64,000 bases of DNA from Octopus sinensis. Taxonomy: Eukaryota. This document shows, one piece after another, positions 4,061 to 57,325 of this stretch. A program made the position numbers and the translations under genes. The notes under the pieces were generated by a model. The model did not search any database. It was not told the origin of the DNA and was given only the letters and a program-made list of their open reading frames with translations. Within the stretch, counting starts at the first letter, position 1, and every line of letters starts with the position of its first letter. The stretch lies in NCBI RefSeq assembly GCF_006345805.1, contig NC_043010.1:60636001-60700000 (forward strand), given 5' to 3'.

Positions 4061-4438
4061 GTAAATATATTTTGAAACAATCCAGTTGTTGCATCAAATT
4101 TCTTTACAATATTCCTGCAAACATATTTTATACATCGTGTTTATTTCCATGTTGTGTTCCATTCCTTATGTCTTTGTCATGAAACACAATGGCTTTTTCA
4201 TAATTTTACATTTTACAGAAGAAATAGACAGAATTACATGGACTTCATTAAACTTGTATCTTTGTCTTGTTTATTCTAAGTTTATTTTAATTAACCAAGA
4301 AAAAGTTTATTATAATCTTTCTGCTCATTTTAAATGCATTCCATTCTTGTGTCATACCAGGGACATTCTAGAATATAAATGCACGTGTTTCTTCTTTTTA
4401 ACATTATGCTTCACTCTGCTTTGTTTTCTAATCAACAG

Positions 4439-8374: not shown

Positions 8375-8635
8375 ATGCTGGCATGGCTTGGATGGTTTGA
8401 CTGAGTACTGGCAAACCAGATGGCTACACCAGGCTCTAATCTGATCTGGCAAGGTTTCTATAGCTGGATGCCCTTCCTAACGCCAACCACTCTGAGAGTG
8501 TAGAGGGTACTTTTTATGTGCCACCAACATGGGCCAATCATGTGGTTCTGGCATCGCCCACACTCAAATGGTGCTTTTTACATGCCACCAGCATATGTGC
8601 CAGTCTGGCGGCACTGGCAATGACCACACTTGAAT
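8375..8635 (-). mobile_element. RTE 3'-end fragment / RTE-tailed SINE
   Basis: CCATGCTGGCATGG..CTGGATGCCCTTCCTAACGCCAACCAC..ATGTGCCACC, matching 9340-9500. Confidence 0.75.
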
Positions 8636-8642
8636 GGTGCTT

Positions 8643-9015
<373 letters not shown>

Positions 9016-9315
9016 AAAATAAGAAAATGGAGAAATACATCGAAATCAAATATCAATTATCAGATAATACTCAATCACATACTTTATTAAACCACCACAT
9101 AAGAAACTATAAGGTTAAACATAATAATGCAGGGTAAAGCAGTGTACATGAAGGAGTGTACATAAAATAGTAATATTATACAATAAGTAGAATACGTATA
9201 ATAGAACATAAATATAAGTACACATAAATACAAATATAGCAGTATATTGGATATATGGTATCCCATGGTGGGTTGCATTTACAACCCCTATCTCAATTTG
9301 AAAATATATATATAT

Positions 9316-12300
9316 CATCATCATCATCATCATCATTTAGCGTCCGTTTTCCATGCTAGCATGGGTTGGACGGTTCAACTGGGGTCTGGGGAGCCCGAAG
9401 GCTGCACCAGGCCAGTCAGATCTGGCAGTGTTTCTACAGCTGGATGCCCTTCCTAACGCCAACCACTCCGAGAGTGTAGTGGGTGATTTATGTGCCACCG
9501 ACACAGGTGCCAGACGAGGCTGGCGAACGGCCACGCTCGGATGGTGTTTTTATGTGCCACCGACACAGGTGCCAGACGAGGCTGGCAGACGGCCACGCTC
9601 GGATGGTGTTTTATGTGCCACCGACACAGGTGCCAGATGAGGCTGGCGGACGGCCACGATCGGATGGTGTTTGTTACGTCCCCAAAGCACGGAGGCCAGT
9701 CTATGCGGTACTGGCTACGGCCACGTTCGGATGATTTTCTTGTGTGCCACCGGCACTGGTACCACAAAGATACAAATTCCATTTATGTTCATCTATTTTG
9801 ATTTGTTTTGATTTGATTTGATTTTCACTTGCCTCAACAGGTCTTCACAAGTGTCACAAGAAGGAAGGTATGCACAGGTGGACTGACTACGTCGCCGGGT
9901 CTTCGGATGGTGTCTTTATGTGCCACCGACACAGGTGCCAGATGTGGCTGGCGAACAGCCACGATCGGATGGTTTTCTTGTGTGCCACCGGTACTGGAAC
10001 CACAAAGATACAAATTCCATTGATGTTCATCTATTTTGATTTGGTTTGATTTTCACTTGCCTCAACAGGTCTTCACAAGTGTCACGCGTGTCACACACTT
10101 GCCTCAACAGGTCTCCACAAGTGTCACACACTTGCCTCTGCCTCAACAGGTCTTCACAAAGTGTCACACACTTGCCTCTGCCTCAACAGGTCTTCACAAG
10201 TGTCATAAGAGGGAAGGTATGCACAGGTGGACTGACTACGTCGCCGGGTCTTTGGATGGTGTTTTTATGTGCCACCGACACAGGTGCCAGGTGAGGCTGG
10301 CGAACGGCCACGATCAGATGGTGTTTGTTGTGCCCACAGCACGGAGGCCAGTCGATGCGGTACCAGCTACGGCCACGTTCGGATGGTTTTCTTGTGTGCC
10401 ACCGGTACTGGAACCACAAAGATACAAATTCCATTGATATTCATCTATTTTGATTTGGTTTGATTTCCACTTGCCTCAACAGGTCTTCACAAGGGTCACA
10501 CACTTGCCTCAACAGGTCTTCACAAGTGTCATAAGAGGGAAGGTATGCACAGGTGGACTGACTACATCGCCGGGTCTTCGGATGGTGTCTTTATGTGCCA
10601 CCGACACAGGTGCCAGACGAGGCTGGCAGACGGCCACGCTCGGATGGTGTTTTTATGTGCCACCGACACAGGTGCCAGATGAGGCTGGCGGACGGCCACG
10701 ATCGGATGGTGTTTGTTACGTCCCCAAAGCACGGAGGCCAGTCTATGCGGTACTGGCTACGGCCACGTTCGGATGATTTTCTTGTGTGCCACCGGCACTG
10801 GTACCACAAAGATACAAATTCCATTTATGTTCATCTATTTTGATTTGTTTTGATTTGATTTGATTTTCACTTGCCTCAACAGGTCTTCACAAGTGTCACA
10901 AGAAGGAAGGTATGCACAGGTGGACTGACTACGTCGCCGGGTCTTCGGATGGTGTCTTTATGTGCCACCGACACAGGTGCCAGATGTGGCTGGCGAACAG
11001 CCACGATCGGATGGTTTTCTTGTGTGCCACCGGTACTGGAACCACAAAGATACAAATTCCATTGATGTTCATCTATTTTGATTTGGTTTGATTTTCACTT
11101 GCCTCAACAGGTCTTCACAAGTGTCACGCGTGTCACACACTTGCCTCAACAGGTCTCCACAAGTGTCACACACTTGCCTCTGCCTCAACAGGTCTTCACA
11201 AAGTGTCACACACTTGCCTCTGCCTCAACAGGTCTTCACAAGTGTCATAAGAGGGAAGGTATGCACAGGTGGACTGACTACGTCGCCGGGTCTTTGGATG
11301 GTGTTTTTATGTGCCACCGACACAGGTGCCAGGTGAGGCTGGCGAACGGCCACGATCAGATGGTGTTTGTTGTGCCCACAGCACGGAGGCCAGTCGATGC
11401 GGTACCAGCTACGGCCACGTTCGGATGGTTTTCTTGTGTGCCACCGGTACTGGAACCACAAAGATACAAATTCCATTGATATTCATCTATTTTGATTTGG
11501 TTGGGTCACACACTTGCCTCAACAGGTCTCCACAAGTGTCACACACTTGCCTCTGCCTCAACAGGTCTTCACAAGTGTCACACACTTGCCTCAACAGGTC
11601 TTCACAAGTGTCATAAGAGGGAAGGTATGCACAGGTGGACTGACTACATCGCCGGGTCTTTGGATGGTGTCTTTATGTGCCAGATGAGGCTGGCGAACGG
11701 CCACGATCGGATGGTGTTTGTTGTGCCCACAGCACGGAGGCCAGCCGATGCGGTACTGGTTACGGCCACGTTTGAGTGGTTTTCTTGTGTGCCACCGGCA
11801 CTGGTACCACAAAGAATACAATTCCACTGATGTTCATCTATTTTGATTTGTTTTGATTTGATTTGATTTCACTTGCCTCAACAGGTCTTCATAAGTGTCA
11901 CAAGAAGGAAGGTATGCACAGGACTGACTACGTCCCAGGTCGGGGCCACGGGTTATGGCCTGACTAGTCTTGCCGGGTCTTCTCATGCACAGCATACTTC
12001 CATAGGTCTCGGTCTCTAGACATTTCCTTAGTGAGACCTAAAGTTCGAAGGTCGTGCTTCACCACCTCGTCCCAGGTTTTCCTGGGTCTACCTCTTCCAC
12101 AGGTTCCCTCCACTGCTAGGGTGTAGCACTTTTGCACACAACTATCTTCAGCCTTTCTTGTCACATGACCATACCAGCGCAGCCGTCTCTCTTGCACGCC
12201 ACAACTGACGCTTCTTAGGTTCAACTTTTCTCTCAAGGAACTTACACTCTGACGATTATGAACACTGACATTACACATCCATCGGAGCATACTGGCTTCA

Positions 12301-15033
12301 TTTCTTGCGAGCTTACGCATATCCTCAGCAGTCACGGCCCATGTTTCACTACCATGTAGCATGGCTGTACGTACACATGCATCATACAGTCTGCCTTTTA
12401 CTCTGAGCGAGAGGCCTTTTGTCACCAGCAGGGGTAAGAGCTCTCTAAACTTTGCCCAGGCTATTCTTACTCTAGCAGTTACACTTTCAGCACACCCACC
12501 CCCGCTACTGACTTGGTCTCCTAGGTAGCGGAAGCTATCAACTACTTCTAGTTGTCTCCCTGGAACGTGGCAGAAGTTGGTCTCTGCATATTTCCAGTGT
12601 TTATTGCTCCTGAGCATTTGCCACAGACAAAAACTATTTTCCTAGTTAGCCTTCCTTTGACATTGCTGCACCTCTTATGTGTCCATAGCTTACACTTGGT
12701 GCATCTTATAGAGTTTCTACCTACACCTTTTTACAGATCGAGCAGGGCCATCTACCTGAAGGCGTTTGTGATTGATCTACCTTCCTACTTATTAGGACTT
12801 TGGTTTTGGCTAGGTTGATTCTAAGGCCCTTCGATTCTAATCCTTGTTTCCACACCTGAAACTTCTCCTCCAGTTCTGATAGTGACTCAGCAATTAGAGC
12901 AAGGTCATCAGCATAGAGGAGCTCCCAGGGGCAACCTGTCTTGAATTCCTCCGTTATTGCCTGGAGGACTATGATAAATAGGAGGGGACTGAGGACTGAA
13001 CCTTGGTGGACCCCAACCTCTACCCGGAATTCTTCACTGTACTCGTTGCCAACCCTCACCTTACTAGCAGCGTCTCTGTACATGGCTTGCACAGCTCTCA
13101 CCAACCATTCTTCTATCCCTAGTTTCCTCATTGACCACCAGATAAGGGACCGGGGGACCCTGTCAAAGGCTTTCTCCAAGTCAACAAAAGCCAGGTACAA
13201 GGGCTTATCTTTGGCTAGGTATTTCTCCTGCAGCTGTCTTACCAGGAATATAGCATCAGTAGTACTTTTCCCTGGCACGAACCCAAACTGCATATCATCT
13301 AAGGTAACTCTCTCTCTAATTAGTTGGGCTACAACCCTCTCCGTAACCTTCATTACCTGATCCAGCAGCTTGATGCCCCTGTAGTTATTTGTCTCTAGGG
13401 CGTCGCCTTTACCTTTGTAGCAGTTGACTATTATGCTGCTACACCAGTCATTGGGTATGACCCCCTCGTGTATCACCTGGTTAACTATACGGGTGACTAA
13501 GCTATAGCCGACACCACCAGATATTTTGAGCATCTCTGCAGTAATTCCTGATGGGCCTGGGGCTTTCCCTGTTTTCATGCTTCTAATTGCCTTATCTACT
13601 AAGGAACTGTTAACTCGGATTGCTGGTCCCTCTGTTGGGTCGACATTCGGCAGACTCTCTTTATCCCATTCATTTTCTTCATTCAGCAACCTATCATAGT
13701 GGCGTCTCCAAGCCTCTCTCTTTGCACCCTCATTAAGTGCAAGTGAACCGTCCTCCTTGCGAACACATTTCTCTCCTACCACGTCACGATTCTCTCTCAC
13801 ACACTGTCTTGCAACACGAAATACCTCAAGTCTTTCATCCTCACGACGCAGGACATTGGCAAATTTTTCCTTCTCTGCTTCCCCTCTGGCTAGATAGACC
13901 TGTCTCCTGGCTTCCCTTCTGGCAGACTGATACACTTCCCTGCTACCACCGTTCTTCCAGGCCTTCCAAGCCTGTTTCTTTTGTCTAATAGCCCTGTCAA
14001 CAATATTGTTCCACCACCACGTTATTTTGGGTCTTAAGGGGACTTTGCACCAGCCACAGATCTGGTCAGCGGCTTTCAGCAGGTTGTCCCTGAGAAGCGT
14101 CCTGTTGTCTTCTACCCCATGCGTAGCTATACTCCCTTCCATTTCGTCTAAGGCTTCAAATAACATATCTCTAAATCTCTGTCCATTCGCAGGGTCTTTA
14201 AGCTTCCAGACCCTTCTTCTCCATGTTGGTCGTCTTCTAGTCGCCCTCTTAGTCCTGATCCTAAAGTCACTAACTACCAGTCTATGTTGTGGGGTGCATT
14301 CTTCACCTGGGAAGGTTTTGGCATTTATAAGCAGCCATCTTTCCCTTTTTCTGGCAAGGATGTAGTCGATTTGGCTAGTATGCCGGCCCGATCGGTAGGT
14401 GACCAGGTGGCTTGTCGGTTTCCTGAAGTTAGTGTTGCAAATCATAAGACTATTCGCATCGCAGAACTCCAGCAGCCTGGTTCCCTCCTCGTTGCGGGAA
14501 CCATAACCGTAGCCTCCATGCACGCCATGGAAGCCCCCAGCACATCGTCCAACATGCCCATTGAAGTCACCAGCCACAAAGAGAAGGTCCCTGTCGTTCG
14601 TCAATGATGTGGTCTGCAGTAGGGTGTCATAGAAACAGTCTTTCTGTCCATCAGGTAGCCCTGGCTGAGGGGCATAGGCCGATATAATAGTTGCTAAACT
14701 ATGGTGGAGCACTAATCTAATCTTAATTATTCTGTCACTTACTCTGACTACCTCGATTACCTTATCTACCCATTTTTCGGCGATAAGCATGCCCACACCC
14801 CCGACTCCGTCAGTATTCCCAGCCCAGAAAATCTTGTACCTCTGTCCTTTGCCTGTGAGGAACCTAGCAGAACCTCCTCTCCACCTCACTTCTTGAATGC
14901 AGCATATATCAACCCACCTCCGTTCAAGCAATTCAACTATCTCGCCAGATCTGCCTTTCAGTGTGCCGACGTTGAGGGTGCCAACCCTGAGGCTGTGGGT
15001 GGGGGTGGAAGTGGTATTGGTCCTAATAGCGTC
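9316..15033 (-). mobile_element. Near full-length RTE-clade non-LTR retrotransposon (APE endonuclease + reverse transcriptase), 5' end missing, two 1-nt frameshifts
   Basis: ORF 12721-15084 has APE motifs (GTLNVGTL, CIQEVRW, SAYAPQ, GDFNGHVG, QIDYIL) and RT motifs (QFGF, FVDLEKAFDRV, GVHQGSVLSP, YADD). It continues after frameshifts (~12730, ~12553) into ORF 11964-12617. Repeat-expanded 3' UTR ends in (GAT)n at 9316-9336; (TA)n on both flanks. Confidence 0.95.
9480..11900. repeat. Nested tandem repeats in the RTE 3' UTR including a 1042-bp-period duplication
   Basis: Identical ORF-track peptides at offset 1042 (9829/10871, 10036/11078, 10183/11225); subunits ATGTGCCACCGACACAGGTGCCAG and CACTTGCCTCAACAGGTCTTCACAAGTGTCA. 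Confidence 0.9.
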
Positions 15034-15078
15034 ATATATATATATATATGAATGTGTGTGTATATATACATTATATAC

Positions 15079-15472
15079 ATACAAGGTGGTGTTAAATAGT
15101 TCCTGGACTAATTTTGTTGTGCAAAATGGCAGTATACAGTTGCATGTGCAGTGAGAGCTAGCAGTGACCTTTATGAGGCTGTGTAGTGAGTAACATAACT
15201 GGGTTTACTTCACAAGTTGTTAAATTTGTGTTTTTGTGATCACATGTTTGCAGTAGTCTGTGATTTTTTCATAGTCAGGAAGTTGGAACAAAAAAACTGT
15301 TGTGAAATTTTGCATTAAACTTAGGAAGTCTACTACAGAGACATTGAGCATGCTTCTGCAATCTTATGGCAATGAGGCAATGGGTTATATGCAATATTTC
15401 AAGTCACACAAGTACTTTAAAAGTGGAAGAACATCCCTGAAAGACAATGAACAATCTGGAAGACTTGCCACT
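15079..15472 (+). mobile_element. Tc1/mariner transposon 5' relic
   Basis: ~15305-15470 reads KFCIKLRKSTTETLSMLLQSYGNEAMG..FKSGRTSLKDNEQSGRL, resembling the mariner transposase N-terminal HTH region. Confidence 0.65.
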
Positions 15473-15586
15473 TTTATATGAAGTATATGAAGTATATCTG
15501 AATGATAAATAATGAGACATGTTGACAATTCAATTCAGGCTGTTTTATTCTGTAGAGATAAGTCTACCCATTAATGATTGTCACAT

Positions 15587-16805
15587 TTCCAGGGAGAAAA
15601 ACTAGAAATAGTTGATAGTTTCCGTTACCTAGGTGACCAAGTCAGCAGCGGGGGCGGGTGTGCTGAAAGTGTAACTGCTAGAGTAAGAATAGCTTGGGCA
15701 AAGTTCAGAGAGCTCTTACCTCTGCTGGTGACAAAAGGCCTCTCGCACAGAGTGAAAGGCAGACTGTATGATGCGTGTGTACGAACAGCCATGCTACATG
15801 GCAGTGAAACATGGGCCGTGACTGCTGAGGATATGCGTAAGCTCGCTAGAAATGAAGCCAGTATGCTCCGATGGATGTGTAATGCCGGTACTCACACTCG
15901 GCAGAGTGTAAGTACCTTGAAAGAAAAGCTGGACCTAAGAAGCATCAGTTGTGGTGTGCAAGAGAGACGTTTGCGCTGGTATGGTCATGTGGCGAGAATG
16001 GATGAAGATAGTTGTGTGAAAAAGTGCCACACCCTAGCGGTTGAGGGAACCTGTGGAAGAGGCAGACCCAGGAAAACCTGGGACGAGGTGGTGAAGCACG
16101 ACCTTCGAACTTTAGGTCTCACTGAGGAAATGACTAGAGACCGAGACCTCTGGAAGTGTGCTGTGCGCGAGAAGACCCGGCAGGACAAGTGAGTCCATAA
16201 CCCGTGGCCTTCTACATGGGATGGAGCCAGCCTACGTATGCATACCTTCCCTTCTTGGGACACAAAACTCTACTTGTGAAGACGTGTTGAGGCAAGTGAG
16301 GATCAGAATCGAAATCGATCAATGGAAATTGCGGATGTGCTACCAGTGCCGGTGGCATGTCGAAACTCTGCTTGTGAAGACCCGTTGAGGCAAGTGAGGA
16401 TCAGAATCGAAATCGATCAATGGAAATCGATCAATGGAAATTGCAGATGTGTTACCAGTGCCGGTGGCATGTAAGAGAACTTTCCGTTTCGCGACCGTTG
16501 CCAGCACCGCCCCGTTTCGTGTCCATTGCCAGCCTCGCCTGGCCCTCGTGCCGGTGGCACATAAAAAGCACCATCCGTTCGTGGCCGTTTGCCAGCTCTG
16601 TCTGGCACCAGTGAGGGTGGCACGTAAAAAGCACCCACTACACTCACGGAGTGGTTGGCGTTAGGAAGGGCATCCAGCCATAGAAACACTGCCAGATTTG
16701 ACTGGGCCTGATGAAGCCTTCTGGCTTCACAGACCCCAGTAGAACCGTCCAACCCATGCTAGCATGGAAAACGGACGCTAAACGATGATGATGATGATGA
16801 TGATG
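15587..16805 (+). mobile_element. 5'-truncated RTE LINE of the same family
   Basis: ORF 15578-16192 is ~90% identical in aa to 11964-12590. 3' UTR ends in (GAT)n; flanked by ACAT at 15583-15586 and 16806-16809. Confidence 0.92.
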
Positions 16806-16984
16806 ACATCAGGAAAAGAGAGTTATTAAATTGTACAGTGCGATGTAACATAGAATATCTACAAATGTATGTGTATATAACATGAACCCATTTGTTATTA
16901 TTTCTATAAGTTATTTTACTTTCTATTTTCCTCTTTTCTTTTGTAGAAATTTCTCCTGCTAAAGTGTGATGAAGAATTCCAGAC

Positions 16985-19384
16985 ATGACAGCATATATTG
17001 GTCTACTGTGTCTTCTACATTTACTGATCACCTTTGTACTGTCCATAGATATTACATACCATGTCAAGGAAGAAGGCAGACCTCACACCTATATAGGAGA
17101 CATTGCTGCTGACTCCAACTTATCACACCCTCTCACACATCAACAACACACTCCCATTACATTTACACAACTACAAAGGACAGTCGAGAGTGGTTCTCAC
17201 TTATTTAATGTCACCAACTCAGGAACACTATACACTACTCAAACACTGGATGCTGAGTCTCTGTGTACATACAACAAGGAATGTTCCAGAATAGTTAAAG
17301 TAGCAGTGAGGAAAGGAAAAACGTTTATGAAAATACTTAAAATTAAAATATTCATAGAAGATGTCAATGACCATTCACCAAAATTTCCAAAGAATGAAAT
17401 TCCAATTCAATTTTTGGAGAGAGACCTTAAAGGTACTAAAATTCCTCTTCCAAATGCCATTGATGAAGATATTTCAATAAAGAATTCTCAAATTACTTAT
17501 ATGATCAAGAAAAGTAAAAGAGAACCATTTTCTCTCTCAATCAAAAAAAGACATGATGGTGTCTCCATACCTGAATTAATATTGGAAGATAAATTAGACA
17601 GGGAACTCAAAGACAAATATATATTGACCTTGGAAGCTAAAGATGGAGGGTACCCTCCCAAAACAGCTACACTCAAGGTACACATATCTGTGACAGATGT
17701 CAATGATAACACACCTGTATTTTCACAGAAACTCTACAACATCTCTATAAATAATTCACATCAAAGACATTTACCAATTCTTACTTTAAAAGCCTCAGAT
17801 CAAGATTCTGGAGACAATGGAAAGATTTCTTACCATTTCAACCATAAAACATCTCGAAATATCCAGAAATATTTTGTATTGAATAAGGAAACTGGAGATT
17901 TATTTTTACATGATAATTTTCAGTTTAGTAAAAAGCAATCATATAAATTATTTATTGAAGCACAGGATGAAGGGAGTCCACCCTTAAGTTCTGTAACCAA
18001 AGTTCAGATTCACATTATTAATAACCAGAATAGTGCTCCATTGATTAACATAGATTTTGTATCTCCTTTATCAGAGAGCTCAGCAGCAGTTTCAGAAGAC
18101 AGTGAAGTAGATAGTTTTATAGCTTATGTTATGGTCACTGACACTGATAGTGGACCTAATGGTGAGGTTATCTGTGATTTAAAACATGATAAGTTTAAAC
18201 TTGCCAAAATAGATTCTAAAGAATATAAAATGATTGTTAAGGGCCATCTTGACAGAGAAATAAGGGACCACTATAAAGTATCTATTGTGTGTCATGACAT
18301 GGGGTCACCTCAACTAGAAAGTAAAAAATATTTCTCTGTCAAAGTAACTGATGTCAATGATGTAGAACCACATTTTACCAAAGAGACATTCCAATTCCTC
18401 ACCTATGAAAACCAGAAAGTTGACTTCCCTATTGGCTTCATCAATGCTACAGACCCTGATCTTGGAGATGGAGGCCAACTTACATATTCTATCATCAATG
18501 ATAACAACAATGATAATATTCCTTTCCAACTGACAAAATATGGATTCATTTCTACATCACAACCAATAGATCGAGAAATGAAAGACATCTATAAGTTCCA
18601 GGTTTTAGTGAAAGATAATGGAACACCTTCTCTCAATGACACTGCCAATATTGTTATTGAGATTCTAGATAAAAATGATAATGCTCCGTATTTTACGTTT
18701 CCTAATAATGACCCTTACAATCTCGATGTCCACTACCATCCACACAGTAAGAAGGACATCACAATTCTGAGAGCATCTGACAAAGACACTGGAAACAATG
18801 CTTTCCTCACATATGGAATACTGAGATCCAATGATAAAAACCTGTTTACAGTGAACTCACACACTGGTGTGTTATCTTTCTCTCGCACAGTTTACCAAAA
18901 TGATGCAGGAACATATGAGCTGCAGTTTATAGTGAAAGACGGTGGTACTCCAGTTCAATCAGCAACAACTGCTATCATACTAACACTGTTTGTTAGTAAT
19001 GATACATCTCCAATGTTGACTGCTGTGCCATTCCAGTCTGGTCACGACCTGAATATGACTTGGGTAATTATCATTGTAGCAGCAGCTGTAATACTATCTG
19101 TGGCTATTGTAGTGTCCATAACACTGTGTGTTTTCAGATGTATTAATCACACAAATAACTCACCCACAACAGCAGAGAATCCCAACTTTCTCTCTCAGAC
19201 TGAGATGAGACAATTACTGTATCAGACTAACAATCCTGTTGCAATAACGAGAAATGCAGAAGAGATATTTAACCGAAATCTTCAGACAATAAAATCTAAA
19301 AGTCAGTTTTTTCTGGAGATGGAACAGACACCAGATGAGTGGAAATTCTCAACAACACAAAGGAGACTTCCACCTGTGCCTCAG
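16985..19384 (+). CDS. Pcdh: Protocadherin C2, large ectodomain exon
   Basis: Open 800 codons, same architecture as C1; donor CAG|GTAAAT at 19384/19385. Confidence 0.97.
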
Positions 19385-19569
19385 GTAAATATTATTTTGG
19401 ATAATTGATGTTTTTTTGTTTATTATTATAAAGGTAGAAGTATTTTATCCATTATTCACGTATGTACAGTCATTACTGCAAATAAACTCAGCTTCAGTCC
19501 CTCAGACTGTTTTATTAGGAGTGATCTAAACTTGTATTTATACAAGATTCCACTTTCTATAATCAACAG

Positions 19570-19957
19570 AGATGTGATTCAATCCATAGTCAAGAACGTC
19601 GTACCAGTTCCATCATGTCTTACAACAGTGACACCTTAACATCCCAAAAGGACAGAGAAGCTAGCAAGAGTAATGGCAAGACTAAACCATATGATGAGAT
19701 ACCTGCAGAACCAGGTAACTTTTATCAAAACATAACATATAAATGTAATTGCCTTTATTACTGTAGGACAATATATAATGTTATGCTTAGTGTAATACAA
19801 GATCAATGTTTCTATCTTTATATATTGGAGTTGTTATATTGAAATGTAATTTGTGTTTGTATATTTGATATTTTGCAGAATATACCAATGACAATCCAGT
19901 GCAGCCACAATACTAAAGGGACAACAAATACAAGATACCTATCTACAGCCAACATAG
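19570..19957 (+). CDS. Pcdh: C2 cytoplasmic exons 2 (19570-19714) and 3 (19879-19957; 1-nt deletion near 19900)
   Basis: Paralogous to the C1 exons with the same splice sites. Exon 3 reads CCAGTGCAGCC versus CCAGT(G/T)GCAGCC in five other copies (C3 CCTGTTGCAGCC), which shifts the tail to ..NPVQPQY* as assembled. Confidence 0.75.
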
Positions 19958-20809
19958 TAGATGTTCCATGACTATTGTTAAATGATTCTCTCACACACCA
20001 AATCTTATACAATACTTTATATTCATATAAAAATATCAACTCTATGTCTCTTTCACCCATCACACACATAAAGGGCCTTACAGTGGCATCTATTATGACC
20101 CCTAATTTACGTCTTTGATTTAGTAAATATTACAAACACCTTACTCTACATTACCATACTACATTATTATAAAATAATTTTTTTACTTTCATTTTGGTAT
20201 AGGCATTTCACTAAACATAGATAACTTCATCTGAGTCATCCTAGAATGTCTAATTGTAGCATCTTTTAGTTTAACACCAATTCTAACATGTATCTTCTGC
20301 TGTTCTACTTTTATTTACAACTTTTCTCTTAGCATTTCCTTTCTGTATAACCTCTAGAAATACTTTTACTAATTACCATCCTTATAGATGGATATTTCTT
20401 GAAGGCGTAAATAGCTCACCTCTAAAAGTAAAGATAGCATACCACCAACGCCTAATCAATTTGGAATTTTTGTTAAATTTTAAAATTGAATAGTTTCATC
20501 TTTTATGAAGTCAAAATATTGAAGATAAATTTAAATATTTCCGGAATGTTCATTTTTGCTTTCAAAGTAATTAATTTGGATAAATTTTCATTTCCACAAT
20601 TAAAACTGGTTTTATTTAAACTTAAAATAAACTTTTGAAATGATAAAAGTTTAACTGTCTCTACTAAAATTTACATCTTTCTGAAAAAAGGTGTAAAATT
20701 ATATAAGTAGTTAATAATAAAGTTTGTATTTTTTCTACAAATTTATAATTTTCTAACACTAAATATTTAAGTAGTAATATTATGATATGTAAACTGTCAA
20801 TCCACTACA

Positions 20810-21420
20810 GTGTAAAGTGATTTCTCTTGATGTGTTTGTGTGACACAGACATCATTGCAGTAATTTCCTATTGGATGAGAGAGATTTTCTATATTTCTTT
20901 CAATATTGAAAGTGAGGCTGATAGCTTTTTTCTTTGTTCATCATACACACAATTGTGTGTGTGTGTGGAGGACATAGAGTTGTAACTAGCACACACCAGC
21001 ATCTGGCTAACATCTCACCTCCCACTACATACAGCAACTGTCACACTATTATATCAGCAGTTACACAGGAACAGCAGCAGCAGCTGCAGTAACACAGGAA
21101 CACTACTACAACAGCAGCAGTACCACTATAATACCACTACAGCAGCAGCAGCAGTTGGAGTGGAACACTACAGCAGGATACACATCATCCATCACACACA
21201 ACTACAGTGAAGGATTAAACAATGCAGGTAAGTCTCTCTCTCTCCCTCTCTCTCTCTCTTTATTATCTTTTCATATTCATTATAACATTTATATTATTTG
21301 TGTTTCTAATGAAAGACAGGGTAAGGATAATATCTAAAACGTCTGCCATGTTGTATATATACAGGGACTGGGACAGTGGAGGATCGAGAGATCTAGCCAT
21401 CACTTCCACCATTAACAATA
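20810..21420 (+). promoter_or_regulatory. Conserved block 2 (donor GT at 21228), putative promoter/first exon of C3
   Basis: Paralog of block 1. Confidence 0.55.
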
Positions 21421-21819
21421 CAACTGCAGTAGACATTGTAATACAATTATTTAGAACTTGACTACATTTTGTAATCTCAGACTCACACAAGACAACATTA
21501 TACAAGAGATATTAAACTATATATATATTACTATGATACATTTTGTATATAATATTGGTCTGATGTAGTCCACACCAGGTGTATGTATATTTGTTTCACT
21601 GTCAGAAAATATTGATTTATAGCCGATAAGACTGAGTGTTAATGTATATCAATATAGTTTATACGTGTTGTTGTAATAACTCATAAATTTAATCTGAATC
21701 CTTCTGTACCTTTTATGAACTTTAACAGATCACTGATATGCCTATATATATAGTGTTTGTGTACTCTGTTAAATATCTTTTATATACTTCTTTGTAATTA
21801 TGATAAACTAAGAATGTTT

Positions 21820-21844
21820 ATTATTATGATTATTATTATTATTA

Positions 21845-21894
<50 letters not shown>

Positions 21895-21895
21895 T
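21820..21895. repeat. (ATT)n microsatellite
   Basis: Direct reading; same relative position as the (ATT)n at 6400. Confidence 0.95.
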
Positions 21896-23382
21896 AGATA
21901 TTTAGTGTGAGATTATAAACTGATGATATTGTCCTGTGTTGCTAAAATATATTAACTCAGACAACAATTGATGAATTCTGAAGATTTGTTGAGAATTTTA
22001 TGAGAAATACCATCATCTGCTTTCTACAAACTGACATTACATTGTTATAGTTATTATAATATAACAAAATATTTCTCAAATATATTTTATGTAGCAGTAT
22101 GTTATGAAGCCTACTTATCGTTTGTAGTAAATATTGTTTAAAATAGTTTTGTTGCGATTTAGTCAATTTAAAATTTTAGAAATTTCTGGAAATTATTATG
22201 ATTCTTTTTTTAAGCGCATCTAATATTTTATAATCTTAATCTTTCTTTTATTAAAAATGTTGTAAAACATTTCTACATAATTTTATAAATTATTTTGTCC
22301 CTGTTATTAATATCACCACATCATTTTTAATAATTGTTGTCAAAATATGTATTATGAAGAAAGTTTTCTGCATCCCACAACAAGATTCCTTAAGTTTTGT
22401 CACTGTTTGAAATAATGAAGTCAATCTCAGTACTTTTATAAAAATATTTTTCTTTCTTTCTTGAGTAGATTGGAATTTGAAATCCCAACCCACTTATACA
22501 GCTTAAACCATTTTAGTAGGGTTACATTCACCCAACCATAAATACATACAAATTACATGAATTTTGCTCTAAGTATTTCGTTGATGTGAATTAAATTTCA
22601 AATATTTTTTTGCAATGTGAATTAATGTATATAGTTTTAGCTATAATCTCAATTAATTTTAAGATGTTTAATTATTCTATGTTTTGAAATGCTTATTGTT
22701 TAATTTAAACAATGTATTGCATCTGTTCCTGCTAATATTCTGATTAGAATATATCTCAATAAAACTACAACTATCTATTCAATAACTGTCAAAGTCAAAT
22801 AAACAGAGAAACTACAAAACATTGGCTTACACAGAATATAGTCTCTACATGAGGAATTCTGAATGATAAACAATGAGACATGCTAAGAATTTCATATTAA
22901 CATTTTAGCATTTAAACTGATCATATCCAGCCCAGATATTCTATATTTTCTGTTCAAACTGGCCAGATCAGGCCTCTCACACTTATTCATTCCAAATATA
23001 AACAATCACACCATCAAAATTTTGAACCTACAAGATAATGCATTATTGAGAGAAAAAAAATGTGACTATATAAGCATTTCATATGAGGGAGTAGCCTGAA
23101 GGTTAAAGGCCTAAAACTATGAATGTGCTAGTATATTCCACAAAAATAACTCTGCTCATGTATAATATTGATGAATGTTTATCAAGAGAAGATATATTTT
23201 GAATTGTGCAGTTGGGTATAATAGAGTATATTTACGTGTGTGTGTGTGTGTATGATTTTATTTCATAAACTATATATGTTTTTATGTACTGCTATTAATT
23301 TCACTGTGCTGAGAGCATGCCAGGCAGTATTTCTTAACATGTCTGTTGATCTTCCCATAAAAGAACAGAACATTATGTGTGC

Positions 23383-23384
<2 letters not shown>

Positions 23385-23421
<37 letters not shown>

Positions 23422-23426
23422 TATAA

Positions 23427-23512
<86 letters not shown>
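23385..23512. repeat. (TA)n/(CA)n microsatellite
   Basis: Direct reading. Confidence 0.95.
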
Positions 23513-23513
<1 letters not shown>

Positions 23514-23625
23514 GTGTATAACATTCACGTGTCTCTTATTATTTCTATAAGTTATTTTACTTTCAATACTGCTGTTGTCTTTTGTAGCAATTTCTCCTGC
23601 TGAAATGTGATGAAGAATTCCAGAC

Positions 23626-26018
23626 ATGACAGCATATATTGGTCTACTGTGTCTTCTACATTTACTGATCACCCTTGTACTGTCCATAGATATTACATAC
23701 CATGTCAAGGAAGAAGGCAGACCTCACACCTATATAGGAGACATTGCTGTTGACTCCAACTTATCACACCCTCTCACACATCAACAACACACTCTCATTA
23801 CATTTACACAACTACAAAGGACAGTCGAGAGTGGTTCTCACTTATTTAATGTCACCAACTCAGGAAAACTCTACACTACTCAAACACTGGATGCTGAGTC
23901 TCTGTGTACATACAACAAGGAATGTTCCAGAATAGTTAAAGTAGCAGTGAGGAAAGGAAAAACTTTTATGAAGATTCTAAAGATAAAAATATTCATAGAA
24001 GATGTCAATGACCATTCACCAGAATTTCCAAAGAATGAAGTTAAAATTGAATTTCTTGAAAGAGATAGAAAAGGAGATAAAATCCCACTTCTAAATGCTA
24101 TAGATCAAGATATTTCAATAAAGAATTCTCAAATTACTTATATGATCAAGAAAAGTAAAAGAGAACCATTTTCTCTCTCAATCAAAATAAGACATGATGG
24201 TGTCTCCATACCTGAATTAATATTGGAAGATAAATTGGACAGGGAACTCAAAGACAAATATATATTGACCTTGGAAGCTAAAGATGGAGGGAACCCTCCC
24301 AAAACAGCTACACTCAAGGTACATGTATCTGTTATAGATGTCAATGATAACACACCTGTATTTTCTCAGAAACTCTACAACATCTCTGTAAGTAATTCAC
24401 ATCAAAGACATTTACCAATTCTTACTTTAAAAGCCACAGATCAAGATTCAGGAGACAATGGAAAGATTTCTTATCATTTCAACCATAAAACATCTCGAAA
24501 TATCCAGAAATATTTTGTATTAAATAAGAAAACAGGTGATTTATTTTTACATGATAATTTTCATTTCAGTAAAAAACAGTCTTATAAATTATTTATAGAA
24601 GCACAGGATGATGGAAATTCACCCTTAACTTCTGTAACCAAAGTCCAGATTCTCATTATTAATAACCAGAATAGTGCTCCATTGATAAATATAGATTTTG
24701 TATCTCCTTTATCAGAGAGTTCCACAGCAGTTTCAGAAGACAGTGAAGTAGATAGTTTTATAGCTTATGTTATGGTCACTGACAATGATAGTGGACCTAA
24801 TGGTGAGGTTATCTGTGATTTAAAACATGATAAATTAAACTTGCCAAAATAGATTCTAAAGAATATAAAATGATTGTTAAGGGCCCTCTTGACAGAGAAA
24901 TAAGGGACCACTATAAAGCATCTATTGTGTGTCATGACATGGGGTCACCTCAACTAGAAAGTAAAAAATATTTCTCAGTCAAAGTAACTGATGTCAATGA
25001 TGTAGAACCACATTTCACCAAAGAGACATTCCAATTCCTCACCTATGAAAACCAGAAAGTTGACTTCCCTATTGGCTTCATCAATGCTACAGACCCTGAT
25101 CTTGGAGATGGAGGCCAACTTACATATTCTATCATCAATGATAACAACAATAACATTCCTTTCCAACTGACAAAATATGGATTTATTTCTACATCACAAT
25201 CAATAGATCGAGAAATGAAAGACATCTATAAGTTCAAGGTTTTAGTGAAAGATAATGGAACACCTTCTCTCAATGACACTGCCAATATTGTTATTGAGAT
25301 TCTAGATAAAAATGATAATGCTCCGTATTTTACGTTTCCTAATAATGACCCTTACAATCTAGATGTCCACTACCATCCACACAGTAAGAAGGACATCACA
25401 ATTCTGAGAGCATCTGACAAAGACACTGGAAACAATGCTTTCCTCACATATGGAATACTGAGATCCAATGATAAAACCTGTTTACAGTGAACTCACACAC
25501 TGGTGTGTTATCTTTCTCTCGCACAGTTTACCAAAATGATGCAGGAACATATGAGCTGCAGTTTATAGTGAAAGACGGTGGTACTCCAGTTCAATCAGCA
25601 ACAACTGCTATCATACTAACACTGTTTGTTAGTAATGATACATCTCCAATGTTGACTGCTGTGCCATTCCAGTCTGGTCACGACTTGAATATGACTTGGG
25701 TAATATCATTGTAGCAGCAGCTGTAATACTATCTGTGGCTATTGTAGTGTCCATAACACTGTGTGTTTTCAGATGTATTAATCACACAAATAACTCACCC
25801 ACACAGCAGAGAATCCCAACTTTCTCTCTCAGACTGAGATGAGACAATTACTGTATCAGACTAACAATCCTGTTGCAATAACGAGAAATGCAGAAGAGAT
25901 ATTTAACCGAAATCTTCAGACAATAAAATCTAAAAGTCAGTTTTTTCTGGAGATGGAACAGACACCAGATGAGTGGAAATTCTCAACAACACAAAGGAGA
26001 CTTCCACCTGTGCCTCAG
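23626..26018 (+). CDS. Pcdh: Protocadherin C3, large exon, frameshifted as assembled (pseudogene or consensus errors)
   Basis: ORF pieces 23626-24852, 24870-25490, 25487-25714 and 25839-26042 tile one full paralog. 1-nt deletions near 24835, 25474, 25704, 25804 and an in-frame 3-nt deletion near 25150; no nonsense substitutions seen; donor at 26018/26019. Confidence 0.85.
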
Positions 26019-26186
26019 GTAAATATTATTTTGGATAATTGATGTTTTTTTGCTTATCATTATAAAGGTAGAAGTATTTTATCCATTATTCATCTATGTA
26101 CAGTTATTACTGCAAAAAAACTCAACTTGGTCCCTCAGACTGTTTTATTAGCTGTAATCTAAACTTACTTTTTCTATAATCAACAG

Positions 26187-26575
26187 AGATGTGATTCAAT
26201 CCATAGTCAAGAACGTCGTACCAGTTCCATCATGTCTTACAACAGTGACACCTTAACATCCCAAAAGGACAGAGAAGCTAGCAAGAGTAATGGCAAGACT
26301 AAACCATATGATGAGATACCTGCAGAACCAGGTAACTTTTATCAAAACATAACATATAAATGTAATTGCCTTTATTACTGTAGGACAATATATAATGTTA
26401 TGCTTAGTGTAATACAAGATCAATGTTTCTATCTTTATATTGAGTTGTTAGTGTTATTGAAATGTAATTTGTGTTTGTATATTTGATATTTTCAGAATAT
26501 ACCAATGACAATCCTGTTGCAGCCACAATACTAAAGGGACAACAAATACAAGATACCTATCTACAGCCAACATAG
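26187..26575 (+). CDS. Pcdh: C3 cytoplasmic exons 2 (26187-26331) and 3 (26496-26575)
   Basis: Same splice sites, lengths and TAG TAG stop as C1. Confidence 0.78.
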
Positions 26576-33056: not shown

Positions 33057-33180
33057 ATATATATATATAACGTTTACACATAGGCTATTATTTCATGAAG
33101 TAATTTTACATAGACTTTCAATATTCCTCTTTTCTTTTGTAGCAATTTCTCCTGCTAAAGTGTGATGAAGAATTCCAGAC

Positions 33181-35576
33181 ATGACAGCATATATTGGTCT
33201 ACTGTGTCTTCTACATTTACTGATCACCCTTGTACTGTCCATAGATATTACATACCATGTCAAGGAAGAAGACAGACCTCACACCTATATAGGGGACATT
33301 GCTGTTGACTCCAACTTATCACACCCTCTCACACATCAACAACACACTCTCATTACATTTACACAACTACAAAGGACAGTCGAGAGTGGTTCTCACTTAT
33401 TTAATGTCACCAACTCAGGAAAACTATATACTACTCAAACACTGGATGCTGAGTCTCTGTGTACATACAACAAGGAATGTTCCAGAATAGTTAAAGTAGC
33501 AGTGAGGAAAGGAAAAACTTTTATGAAAATTCTTAAAATAAAAATATTGATACAGGATATCAATGACCATTCACCAGAATTTCCACAGAATGAAGTTGAA
33601 ATTGAATTTCTAGAAAGAGATACTAAAGGAGATAAAATAACCCTTCCAAATGCCATTGATGAAGATATTTCAACAAAGAATTCCCAAATTACATATATGA
33701 TAAACAAAAGTAGGAGAGAACCATTTTCTCTCTCTGTCACAAAACAGGATGGTATTTTCATACCTACTCTGACTTTGCAAGAAAAATTAGACAGGGAAGT
33801 ACAAGACTCATATATGTTAACCCTGGAAGCTAAAGATGGAGGGAACCCTCCCAAAACAGCTACACTCAAGGTACACATATCTGTTATAGATGTCAATGAT
33901 AATACACCTGTATTTTCTCAGAAACACTACAACATCTCTGTAAGTAATTCACATCAAAGACATTTACCAATTCTTACTTTAAAAGCCACAGATAAAGATT
34001 CTGGAGACAATGGAAAGATTTCTTACCATTTCAACCATAAAACATCTCGAAATGTCCAGAAATATTTTGTAATAAATAAGAACACCGGAGATTTATTTTT
34101 ACATGACAATTTTCATTTTAGTAAAAAGCAGTCTTATAAGTTATTTATAGAAGCTAGAGATGGAGGAAATCCACCTTTAAAATCAGTCACAAAAGTCCAG
34201 ATTTACCTTATTAATAACCAAAATACTGCTCCATTGATAAACATAGATTTCGTATCTCCTTTATCAGAGAGTTCAGCAGCAGTTTCTGAAGACAGTGAAG
34301 TAGATAGTTTTATAGCTTATGTTATGGTCACTGACAATGATAGTGGACCTAATGGTGAGGTTATCTGTGATTTAAAACATGATAAATTTAAACTTGCCAA
34401 AATAGATTCTAAAGAATATAAAATGATTGTTAAGGGCCCTCTTGACAGAGAAATAAGGGACCACTATAAAGTATCTATTGTGTGTCATGACATGGGGTCA
34501 CCTCAACTAGAAGGTAAAAAATATTTCTCTGTCAAAGTAACTGATGTCAATGATGTAGAACCACATTTCACCAAAGAGACATTCCAATTCCTCACCTATG
34601 AAAACCAGAAAGTTGACTTCCCTATTGGCTTCATCAATGCTACAGACCCTGATCTTGGAGATGGAGGCCAACTTACATATTCTATCATCAATGATAACAA
34701 CAATGATAACATTCCTTTCCAACTGACCAAATATGGATTTATTTCTACATCACAACCAATAGATCGAGAAATGAAAGACATCTATAAGTTCAAGGTTTTA
34801 GTGAAAGATAATGGAACACCTTCTCTCAATGACACTGCCAATATTGTTATTGAGATTCTAGATAAAAATGATAATGCTCCGTATTTTACGTTTCCTAATA
34901 ATGACCCTTACAATCTCGATGTCCACTACCATCCACACAGTAAGAAGGACATCACAATTCTGAGAGCATCTGACAAAGACACTGGAAACAATGCTTTCCT
35001 CACATATGGAATACTGAGATCCAATGATAAAAACCTGTTTACTGTGAACTCACACACTGGTGTGTTATCTTTCTCTCGCACAGTTTACCAAAATGATGCA
35101 GGAACATATGAGCTGCAGTTATAGTGAAAGACGGTGGTACTCCAGTTCAATCAGCAACAACTGCTATCATACTAACACTGTTTGTTAGTAATGATACATC
35201 TCCAATGTTGACTGCTGTGCCATTCCAGTCTGGTCACGACCTGAATATGACTTGGGTAATTATCATTGTAGCAGCAGCTGTAATACTATCTGTGGCTATT
35301 GTAGTGTCAATAACACTGTGTGTTTTCAGATGTATTAATCACACAAATAACTCACCCACAACAGCAGAGAATCCCAACTTTCTCTCTCAGACTGAGATGA
35401 GACAATTACTGTATCAGACTAACAATCCTGTTGCAATAACGAGAAATGCAGAAGAGATATTTAACCGAAATCTTCAGACAATAAAATCTAAAAGTCAGTT
35501 TTTTCTGGAGATGGAACAGACACCAGATGAGTGGAAATTCTCAACAACACAAAGGAGACTTCCACCTGTGCCTCAG
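33181..35576 (+). CDS. Pcdh: Protocadherin C4, large exon, one frameshift as assembled
   Basis: ORFs 33181-35124 and 35124-35600 join across CAGTTATAG versus CAGTTTATAG (1-nt deletion at ~35119); 3-nt deletion in EC2; donor 35576/35577. Confidence 0.9.
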
Positions 35577-35760
35577 GTAAATATTATTTTGGATAATTGA
35601 TGTTTTTTTGCTTATTATTATGAAGGTACAAGTATTTTATCCATTATTCATCTATGTACAGTTATAACTACAAAGAACTCAACTTCAGTCCCTCAGACTG
35701 TTTTATTAGGAGTGATCTAAACTTGTATTGATATAAGATTCCTTTTTCTATAATCCACAG

Positions 35761-36149
35761 AGATGTGATTCAATCCATAGTCAAGAACGTCGCACCAGTT
35801 CCATCATGTCTTACAACAGTGACACCTTAACATCCCGAAAGGACATAGAAGCTAGCAAGAGTAATGGCAAGACTAAACCATATGATGAGATACCTGCAGA
35901 ACCAGGTAACTTTTATCAAAACATAACATATAAATGTAATTGCCTTTATTACTGTAGGACAATATATAATGTTATGCTTAGTGTAATACAAGATCAATGT
36001 TTCTATCTTTATATATTGGAGTTGTTATGTTGAAATGTAATTTGTGTTTGTATATTTGATATTTTGCAGAATATACCAATGACAATCCAGTTGCAGCCAC
36101 AATACTAAAGGGACAACAAATACAAGATACCTATCTACAGCCAACATAG
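35761..36149 (+). CDS. Pcdh: C4 cytoplasmic exons 2 (35761-35905) and 3 (36070-36149)
   Basis: Same splice sites, lengths and stop as C1. Confidence 0.8.

Positions 36150-57291: not shown

Positions 57292-57325
<34 letters not shown>

Follow-up and report, generated by a model that had tools for sequence, protein, structure and literature searches.

Here, we describe a tandem array of protocadherin genes in Octopus sinensis whose members are nearly identical over most of their length and differ as patchworks in two extracellular cadherin (EC) domains, EC2 and EC3. The stretch analysed, in the following called the window, comprises 64,000 nt (CM016872.1:60,636,001-60,700,000, assembly GCA_006345805.1) and carries seven of these genes, C1 to C7, located head to tail on the + strand, each with an open reading frame (ORF) of about 800 aa. 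With a probability of roughly 0.8, we attribute this pattern to gene conversion between paralogues, in which long tracts homogenise the flanks of the EC2-EC3 region and rarer short tracts reassort the variants within it.

The window is part of an array of at least 12 tandem three-exon genes with a span of roughly 210 kb. Copies Sa, Sb and Sc are located upstream, to at least 60.51 Mb, and C8 and C9 downstream, where C9 is the last copy; the O. sinensis copies analysed come from both sides of a segment of ~105 kb (60.53-60.64 Mb). Approximately 146 kb of the orthologous array of O. vulgaris (OX597827.1, an independent assembly) were reached via annotated proteins, and 29 large exons were aligned, 12 from O. 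sinensis and 17, designated V, from O. vulgaris. The large exon encodes the signal peptide, EC1-EC6, a transmembrane (TM) segment and most of the cytoplasmic tail. Each copy in the window and in O. vulgaris has its own exons of 144 nt and 78 nt downstream of it, which were located by tblastn with the last 74 aa of annotated relatives as queries.

The seven coding exons of the window were aligned with MAFFT. Of 2415 columns, 291 are variable, and nearly all of these fall into nt 300-1110 of the coding sequence (CDS; aa 100-370), in the following the variable region. Two window copies differ at 62-131 of 810 positions here, at 1-7 of 300 upstream and at 8-19 of 1305 downstream, so that EC2-EC3 of the paralogues differ by 8-16%, compared with ~1% in the signal peptide and EC1 and from EC4 to the cytoplasmic tail. 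Synonymous divergence (dS) among C1-C9 amounts to 0.02 in codons 1-100, 0.40 in codons 101-370 and 0.027 in codons 371-800, with a peak of ~1.0 in codons 181-210 and a dip to 0.10-0.19 in codons 241-300; between orthologues it is 0.01-0.05 throughout the gene. Since the ratio of nonsynonymous to synonymous divergence (dN/dS) of the variable part is 0.21 among paralogues (about 0.24 between orthologues), the regions differ in age and not by accelerated protein change. Gene-wide positive selection is unsupported at this value.

Two parts of the large exon, one between its splice acceptor and nt 300 and the other between nt 1110 and the donor, show a mean paralogue divergence of ~1%, and homogenisation starts exactly at the acceptor. 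A further block comprises exon 2, intron 2 and exon 3 (0.8-2.2%, with 2.2% in the 163-nt intron 2). Upstream DNA and intron 1 show ~40-55% divergence among paralogues, and intron 1 (~41%, 146-1537 nt long) forms a second divergent island between homogenised blocks. As one block runs from acceptor to donor, a cDNA-mediated homogenisation of exons only was considered; it is ruled out by the homogenised intron 2, for which neither protein-level constraint nor cDNA-templated repair is sufficient. Recent duplication as the reason for the ~1% divergence is ruled out as well, by the dS of EC2-EC3, the unalignable flanks and conserved blocks that are specific for the genus. The GC content at third codon positions (GC3) is 0.31-0.36 where the gene is homogenised and 0.21-0.25 in the islands. 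This lends weak support, and the criterion was also applied to the converted regions of fugu (PMC1852091).

The comparison between genera, for which 11 paralogues labelled Argonauta hians by their source were used, exhibits the same division. Over aa 381-800, copies differ by 1.3% within Octopus and 2.6% within Argonauta (maximum 3.8%), but by 11.8% between the genera (minimum 10.5%). Over aa 115-365, the within-genus distances (17.5% in Octopus, 28.6% in Argonauta) overlap with the between-genus distance of 27.6% (minimum 18.5%), and the closest relative of several Argonauta copies is an Octopus copy. When O. sinensis is compared with O. vulgaris, orthologues differ at 7-17 and paralogues at 11-19 of 1590 positions of the conserved blocks. 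Orthologues are thus no closer than paralogues there, and orthology has been erased in these blocks since the split of the species, while it is still clear in EC2-EC3. The flanks are under concerted evolution around an EC2-EC3 island.

Inside the homogenised block, a dimorphic patch of 13 nt was observed at the start of EC4 (nt 1115-1127; 2775-2787 in C1), which is either of an ACGGAA type (SEDSEVDSF) or of a CAAATG type (SEASKIGSF). The two types are scattered over non-adjacent copies in both Octopus species. As both also occur in the Argonauta paralogues, this is an old two-state patch that outlived homogenisation.

Within the variable region, the sequence-only reading had described EC2 and EC3 as patchworks with segments shuffled between non-adjacent copies, and the segments it named were recovered. 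C2 (17468-17650) and C3 (24109-24291) have 183 nt in common with two mismatches (window positions 17547 and 17596), whereas the 143 nt just before (CDS nt 339-481) contain 27. The similarity begins at nt 482 and falls again past nt 666, which corresponds to 17466-17650 in C2 and 24107-24291 in C3 (+ strand), a part of EC2 reading DISIKNSQ...LEAKDGG. Upstream of this tract, C3 (EVKIEFLERDRKGDKI) is like C4 and C6, as had been noted, and unlike C2. C4 and C7 show a common 3-nt deletion and the motif DGIFIP, after which C4 continues with TLTL as C1 does (33740-33777, + strand) and C7 with ELILED as C2 and C3 do (58006-58043, + strand). In EC3, C5 and C6 have ARDGGKPPLSS in common, C4 and C7 ARDGGNPPLKS, and C6 and C7 NFQVSKK.

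These tracts were evaluated with a fragment test, in which a mismatch-tolerant score over polymorphic sites is compared with permutations of the site order and corrected over all 55 pairs of O. sinensis copies. Seven fragments reach a global P<0.02. The C2-C3 tract (nt 486-666) covers 87 polymorphic sites with 2 mismatches (global P=0.003), and the C5-C6 tract (nt 978-1016; 41674-41712 in C5), which contains the ARDGGKPPLSS motif, covers 25 with none (global P=0.012). Two more of the seven involve C5, namely nt 443-612 with C9 and nt 1004-1059 (41700-41755) with C1. A strict test of zero-mismatch runs on the seven window copies gave only moderate P values per pair (C2-C3 0.011) and was superseded by the mismatch-tolerant score. 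Exchange between non-adjacent copies is found for C5-C9, C1-C5 and C4/C7, and in O. vulgaris for V9 and V15, ~52 kb apart.

The pairwise homoplasy index (PHI) is significant by permutation (P<=0.0005) for the seven genes of the window, for the O. sinensis copies taken together and for those of O. vulgaris. With all sites of the variable region, its z is -9.9 for the 12 copies of O. sinensis and -9.1 for the 17 of O. vulgaris; with third codon positions alone, it is -5.8 and -4.1, respectively. Linkage disequilibrium (LD) is short-ranged: for biallelic sites 1-5 nt apart, mean r2 is 0.36 in O. sinensis and 0.21 in O. vulgaris, and it reaches the small-sample background by 20-40 nt. The 3-nt deletion, which lies in the beta4-beta5 loop of EC2 and is present in 11 of the 29 copies, occurs together with TLTL (C4, V11, V12) as well as with ELIL (C7, Sb, Vb, V3, V4). 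Copies without the deletion also carry TLTL (C1, V8) or ELIL (C2, C3, V9, V10, V5, V7), which is a four-gamete violation, and the switch from deletion to haplotype is confined to ~25 nt.

Could such a pattern arise without any exchange? In that case the copies would be ancient paralogues on a near-star tree, and the patchwork would be homoplasy from recurrent mutation and convergent selection at the few tolerated residues. A dS of 0.4-1.0 does imply multiple hits, and adjacent sites are often incompatible. As a null, 60 data sets were simulated without recombination on the neighbour-joining tree, with site rates distributed along the sequence as in the real data. These sets reproduce how many sites are informative (161 against 175) and what share of site pairs is incompatible (0.50 against 0.52). 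As the simulation matched the overall level of incompatibility, the Hudson-Kaplan minimum number of recombination events (Rmin=49) was dropped as evidence of recombination; only spatial structure, indel combinations and templated changes count as evidence of exchange. Here the null fails, with a simulated PHI z of +0.5 +/- 1.2 and a minimum of -2.8, as opposed to -10.7 observed. The signal at third codon positions, the decay of r2 with distance, the multi-site tracts with 0-2 mismatches across 25-131 polymorphic sites and the deletion joined to both downstream haplotypes speak against it in the same way. In addition, 42 of 42 orthologue differences at paralogue-polymorphic sites use an already existing allele (see below). 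A history without exchange is thus largely refuted and appears very improbable to us; a single tree without excess homoplasy does not describe the region.

The short range of LD also restricts what is exchanged. The proposal that short conversion tracts recombine a set of sub-EC alleles holds with respect to exchange, but not with respect to a tidy set of sub-domain cassettes, since linkage is lost within ~20-40 nt. The variation behaves more like a pool of single-site and short-patch variants with occasional tracts of 60-280 nt than like discrete cassettes. Taken as a whole, the earlier interpretation is partly supported.

Positional orthologues in O. vulgaris were assigned by collinear mapping of 1-kb chunks of O. 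sinensis, which gave C1=V8, C2=V9, C3=V10, C4=V11, C5=V13, C6=V14 and C9=V15, with flanks that are mostly 95-99% identical. V1-V5 had been considered as orthologues of the window copies and were rejected; the true ones were found through cluster members and flank collinearity. Out of 810 positions of the variable region, 7 differ for C1/V8, 9 for C2/V9, 18 for C3/V10, 2 for C4/V11, 11 for C5/V13, 62 for C6/V14 and 69 for C9/V15; in the same comparison, paralogues differ at ~90-130. V9 and C2 are 99.2% identical over the large exon, and V11 has exactly the same EC2-EC3 protein as C4, with the 3-nt deletion, DGIFIP and TLTL. The mosaics of C1-C5 are found in O. vulgaris as well, which shows that they did not arise by chimeric assembly and are not recent.

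Chimeric assembly or polishing artefacts of a repetitive array are a natural concern where 99% identity extends over most of each gene. Private 1-nt indels in both assemblies indicate an imperfect consensus, and there are no orthologues with which C7 and C8 could be checked. Yet the independent assembly of the other species shows the patchwork of C1-C5 again, at 0.25-2.2% divergence; V11 has the deletion followed by TLTL as C4 does, and V9 and V10 share the tract of C2 and C3. The patches are located where the gene is most divergent and reads can be placed uniquely, and the flanking collinearity is clean. We therefore consider artificial mosaics scarcely credible as an explanation.

The two species also differ in entire units, which were acquired or lost after they split. 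The segment of ~20 kb with C7 and C8, which extends from window positions 54000-64000 on to ~60,710,000 of the chromosome, finds no collinear match in O. vulgaris. Conversely, V12 is a 10.5-kb unit found only in O. vulgaris, where it is located between the orthologues of C4 and C5 and is partly C4-like.

The differences between orthologues indicate where new variants come from. In the variable region of the five close orthologue pairs, both alleles of 42 out of 47 substitutions are present in other paralogues, while random mutation would give a proportion of 0.23, or 0.35 if all substitutions were transitions (binomial P about 2e-20). At paralogue-polymorphic sites, a third allele was never seen among the orthologue differences (0 of 42). 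In the conserved blocks, 36 of 59 orthologue differences are templated, versus an expected proportion of 0.03-0.09. With an excess in both regions, most of the divergence between orthologues is therefore templated. The same few sites were observed to differ in several orthologue pairs, namely CDS nt 829/831 (codon 277), 1160, 1579 and 1615. Positions 829/831 differ in C2/V9, Sa/Va and C6/V14 and position 1615 in six pairs, and each time only the same two states alternate; these sites are either repeatedly converted or long-lived polymorphisms.

New EC2/EC3 combinations have appeared since O. sinensis and O. vulgaris separated. C3 and V10 differ at 10 positions within 63 nt (CDS nt 369-431; 23994-24056 in C3, + strand), which change 5 amino acids. 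All 10 alleles are present in other paralogues, and the cluster is significant by permutation even if restricted to polymorphic sites (P<5e-5), which makes the segment a candidate tract of conversion after the split. The second case is the EC3 island of V15. Along the 202 nt of nt 913-1114, V15 does not differ from C2 (17897-18098, + strand) at any site, and C9 differs from V15 at 29 sites. V9 matches V15 there as well except for a 1-nt gap, with 78 polymorphic sites and no mismatch (global P<=0.002). On both sides V15 is C9-like, namely upstream of nt 912 and in the CAAATG (SEASKIGSF) patch at nt 1115-1127, which is absent from C2 and V9. The donor-like copy is ~52 kb and six genes away, and the tract spans the whole variable island of EC3, with ends in a semi-homogenised spacer and in a conserved block. 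As V15 matches exactly and C9 matches nothing exactly, parsimony favours a transfer from V9 to V15 in the O. vulgaris lineage. The V15 tract is two-sided and therefore the result of conversion, not of a crossover.

Unequal crossing-over between misaligned copies, which would produce chimeras with a single switch, has some appeal in view of the unit gains and losses described above (10.5 kb for V12, which is partly C4-like, and 20 kb for C7 and C8). As a substitute for conversion it appears improbable. The best-resolved tracts, V15 nt 913-1114 and C2/C3 nt 482-666, have two ends, the flanks of C1-C6 and C9 are collinear with their orthologues even where internal patches differ, and LD decay over tens of nucleotides needs far more switch points than copy-number changes yield.

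Gene conversion between paralogues thus does not only erase differences, as the earlier reading had also proposed. It still erases them too: in O. vulgaris, V9 equals V10 over nt 483-762, with no mismatch at 131 polymorphic sites, while C2 and C3 differ at 8 sites there.

The variable residues are concentrated in two domains. Amino-acid entropy over 27 copies is 0.56 bits in EC2, 0.26 in the N-terminal and 0.44 in the C-terminal half of EC3, and 0.04-0.08 elsewhere. An AlphaFold2 model of EC1-EC4 of C2 consists of four cadherin-like beta domains (mean predicted local distance difference test score, pLDDT, 87.4). In this model, the most variable residues of EC2 are 140/142/144 on beta1, in alternation, 146/148 in the next loop and 151-154 on beta2, followed by 187/190 and the indel on beta4 and in the beta4-beta5 loop and by 197/199/201, again alternating, on beta5. 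In EC3, residues 331/339/343/344 of the beta6-beta7 loop and beta7 are variable. The modelled every-second-residue pattern would fit one exposed face of the sheet.

In vertebrate clustered protocadherins, EC2 and EC3 determine isoform specificity, with the EC2 beta4-beta5 loop among the elements involved, and EC1 and EC4 contribute non-selective affinity; an antiparallel EC1-4 dimer was predicted for non-clustered families, too (PMC5001838). The octopus layout, with homogenised EC1 and EC4 and diverse EC2 and EC3, agrees with this division of labour. By analogy, reshuffled patches in EC2 and EC3 would alter homophilic specificity. A new combination must, however, stay self-complementary, EC2 against EC3 of the same protein, in order to function.

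Several points weigh against the reading in terms of conversion or against parts of it. Homoplasy probably accounts for some of the fine-scale pattern, above all where synonymous sites are saturated. The directions of the events after the split are given by parsimony, and C9 might be the converted partner instead of V15. Templated differences at single sites could also stem from polishing with paralogous reads mapped to the wrong copy, or from ancestral allelic variants that sorted differently in the two lineages. Donors may be among the unsampled copies, as 60.53-60.64 Mb of the array are outside the data. C6 and V14, with flanks that are 97-98% identical, differ at 62 of 810 positions of the variable region, of which 47 are templated; the differences are spread evenly and 15 are private, and the pair may not be strictly orthologous in this exon. 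C7 has no collinear orthologue in O. vulgaris, and its mosaic is seen in the O. sinensis assembly only. At the gene-wide level, a dN/dS of 0.21 gives no sign of diversifying selection, and the step to new specificities is drawn by homology to vertebrate protocadherins.

From these facts, two regimes of conversion between paralogues can be told apart. The array is old, as EC2-EC3 dS values of 0.4-1.0 and the scarcely alignable intron 1 and upstream DNA indicate. Frequent conversion keeps three blocks at ~1%, namely from the acceptor to nt 300, nt 1110-2400 and exon 2 to exon 3 with intron 2. Within EC2-EC3, conversion is rarer per site by at least an order of magnitude, as a rough estimate, with short tracts from a few nucleotides up to ~60-280 nt that move existing variants between copies which are adjacent or tens of kb apart and do not make these copies alike. 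As a result, each gene is a different mosaic from a common pool of variants, with linkage gone beyond ~20-40 nt. On the timescale of the sister species, the mosaics are mostly stable (as the 2 of 810 differences of C4/V11 illustrate) and at times remodelled, and unequal crossing-over adds or removes whole units (C7 and C8 only in O. sinensis, V12 only in O. vulgaris). Sequence divergence, selection against a loss of diversity, or both may keep conversion in EC2-EC3 rare.

Rates can be given as rough figures. The saturation of orthology in the conserved blocks implies at least ~1 conversion per site and lineage since the split. In the islands, approximately 5-60% of the paralogue-level divergence would have been introduced per orthologue pair, which is in the order of 0.1 conversions per site and lineage. 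Over the age indicated by island dS this would amount to a few conversions per site, enough to break linkage and far below the number of array members, which would be needed to homogenise. A lowered conversion rate alone would therefore suffice for the pattern, and the intron 1 island demonstrates that a divergent island can persist without protein-level selection.

This leads to the question of whether the reshuffling is of any use. The exchange may be real and merely spill over from the homogenised blocks, slowed by divergence, with reshuffling neither useful nor selected and the identity of each gene kept by purifying selection. We regard this as possible, at somewhat less than an even chance. 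The dN/dS values in EC2-EC3 point in this direction, as do the stability of most mosaics across the species split (C4 and V11 without an amino-acid change in EC2-EC3), the presence of a second island in intron 1 and the rate argument above. What such a neutral spillover does not readily account for is that the island falls on those two domains which determine specificity in vertebrates (PMC5001838), that hypervariable residues occupy every second position on strands as well as loops, and that the sparing of EC2-EC3 evolved independently in vertebrates (PMC4978886, PMC1852091). Alternatively, the array might be an evolvable germline generator of barcodes, in which near-identical blocks (EC1, the N-terminal spacer of EC3, and EC4 onward) serve as homology anchors and patches of EC2 and EC3 are swapped as cassettes between distant copies. 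We put this forward only as a speculation that is rather unlikely to hold in full. If it did, new homophilic identities would arise combinatorially and would differ even between sister species, and the system would be convergent with the vertebrate cluster, yet mechanistically richer.

From the structure of the loci, the array members are whole three-exon delta-type protocadherin genes. Pfam finds Cadherin_2 at aa 23-106 and Cadherin in 5 stretches (E=1.7e-74), and the single-exon ORFs of ~800 aa contain a hydrophobic TM stretch. EC1-EC4 of C2 align end to end with solved EC1-4 and EC1-6 structures of protocadherins, with 6VG1 as the best match (E=2e-97) and gamma-B4, gamma-B2, alpha-7 and Pcdh10/18/19, i.e. 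delta-2 and clustered types, as further relatives. Among annotated proteins, entries of O. sinensis and O. vulgaris named 'protocadherin beta-15-like' are the closest. The frame-shifted model of C7 is identical to an annotated O. sinensis protein (P0006) whose locus overlaps the window, and an exact look-up of the C2 product and of P0023 gave no recorded entry. Variable exons joined to shared constant exons, as in vertebrates, are ruled out by the small 3' exons of every copy; that cephalopod protocadherins are whole genes and not variable exons was likewise stated in PMC9068888.

In all seven copies, the large exon begins at a splice acceptor, TTTTGTAG, 38 nt 5' of the ATG and preceded by a polypyrimidine tract, and it ends after codon 800 at a donor, CCTCAG|GTAAAT. 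With an acceptor 38 nt before the ATG, the coding exon is not the first one, and there must be a non-coding leader exon further upstream, either one per copy or a shared one. The stretches with acceptor and polypyrimidine tract are located at 1613-1660, 16937-16984, 23578-23625, 33133-33180, 40649-40696, 48304-48351 and 57400-57447 for C1 to C7 (+ strand). Directly 5' of the acceptors, microsatellites were observed that differ by copy, (TG)n, (TA)n or (TC)n.

All protocadherin features of the window are on the + strand. The large exon of C1, defined by ORF, acceptor and donor, extends from 1623 to 4060 (ATG at 1661, variable region 1961-2770) and is followed by exon 2 (4439-4582), intron 2 and exon 3 (4747-4824), which were found by tblastn. 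C2 has its large exon at 16947-19384 (ATG 16985, variable region 17285-18094) and its small exons at 19570-19713 and ~19877-19954, and C3 at 23588-26018 (ATG 23626, variable region 23926-24735), 26187-26330 and 26495-26572. For C4, the large exon is located at 33143-35576 (ATG 33181, variable region 33481-34287) and the small exons at 35761-35904 and 36069-36146; for C5, the large exon is located at 40659-43096 (ATG 40697, variable region 40997-41806). C6 comprises a large exon at 48314-50751 (ATG 48352, variable region 48652-49461), an intron 1 of ~1.5 kb and small exons at 52304-52447 and 52612-52689, and C7 a large exon at 57410-59841 (ATG 57448, variable region 57747-58553) and small exons at 60218-60361 and 60526-60603. 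The divergent intron 1 of C1 to C7 corresponds to 4061-4438, 19385-19569, 26019-26186, 35577-35760, 43097-43433, 50752-52303 and 59842-60217.

The reading frames are broken in some copies by 1-nt deletions, mostly in short A or T runs: four in C3 (at approximately 24835, 25474, 25705 and 25804), one in C4 (35121, aligned nt 1942), three in C7 (57543, 58994 and 59057) and one in C8. C3 also has a 3-nt deletion in common with its orthologue V10. The 1-nt deletions of O. sinensis are absent from the O. vulgaris orthologues, and V4, V9, V10 and V13 exhibit private 1-nt indels instead. Either the consensus of both assemblies is wrong at these sites, or the copies are young pseudogenes of independent origin. 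The 1-nt indels in these repeats account for the fused and truncated gene models of both annotations, and copy counts and pseudogene calls for this family need care.

Outside the mosaic, an insertion of roughly 6-7 kb between C1 and C2 (9300-16300) is missing from O. vulgaris. It contains tandem repeats with a period of ~1 kb (9.3-11.5 kb) and an ORF of a long interspersed nuclear element (LINE) with APE endonuclease and reverse transcriptase (12721-15084, minus strand), which is flanked by inverted partial copies of its own C-terminal part (11964-12617, minus strand; 15578-16192, + strand). The ORFs at 8634-9137 and 32-748 are microsatellite or low-complexity artefacts and not genes.

Region-restricted gene conversion in vertebrate clustered protocadherins was reportedly described by Noonan et al. 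in 2004. For fugu, zebrafish, mouse and Xenopus, a regional conversion that spares EC2-EC3 is documented (PMC4978886, PMC1852091), and the arrays of vertebrates and cephalopods are of independent origin (PMC4978886). The octopus array resembles the vertebrate clusters in several respects: paralogues are >99% identical with low dS in the 3' ectodomain and cytoplasmic sequence, dS is highest in EC2-EC3, GC3 is raised in the converted parts, and homogenisation is lineage-specific. It differs from them in that each octopus unit is a complete gene that has small 3' exons to itself (cf. PMC9068888), and in that EC1 and the signal peptide are homogenised as well, so that EC2-EC3 form an internal island. 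Furthermore, EC2-EC3 of vertebrates are described as seldom or not converted, whereas those of the octopus show pervasive short-tract exchange and a dated cassette replacement.

Among the cephalopod protocadherin expansions (Albertin et al. 2015/2022; Styfhals et al. 2019; Amphioctopus, PMC9795677), the same family in head-to-tail arrays is found. That the similarity of the copies may reflect recent duplication or conversion was remarked in PMC6339937 and PMC9068888; a domain-resolved analysis, sparing of EC2-EC3, patchwork exchange or a comparison of orthologues was not found in the cephalopod protocadherin literature searched. The expansions were dated by whole-gene Jukes-Cantor distances in PMC9795677. 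With ~70% of each gene homogenised, such whole-gene datings are distorted. In this array, only EC2-EC3 keep phylogenetic signal, and this signal is itself reticulate.

In MHC class I and II and KIR genes, short templated tracts between paralogues or alleles yield mosaic binding domains, a rapid decay of LD and new combinations without new mutations. Those are immune receptors with documented balancing or diversifying selection, unlike the octopus protein, a presumed homophilic neuronal adhesion molecule with low dN/dS. The array also resembles arthropod Dscam1 and sDscam (PMC6339937, PMC9258826), where alternative binding-domain cassettes lie in tandem within constant sequence and serve neuronal self-recognition with many homophilic specificities. 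In Dscam, however, a single gene yields its combinations in somatic cells through splicing or the choice of promoter, whereas each octopus gene carries one combination, which is set in the germline and altered by conversion over evolution.

The homogenisation regime is convergent with that of vertebrates, while patchwork exchange in EC2-EC3 and the dated cassette swap go beyond the vertebrate descriptions. An independent invertebrate array in which only EC2-EC3 are spared argues for a regime that is tied to how these receptors encode specificity. Conversion in EC2-EC3 is not simply excluded here but reshuffles, and positional orthologues of sister species differ in their combinations. C9/V15 and C3/V10 are thus natural pairs that bear on how many residues have to change to alter homophilic recognition.

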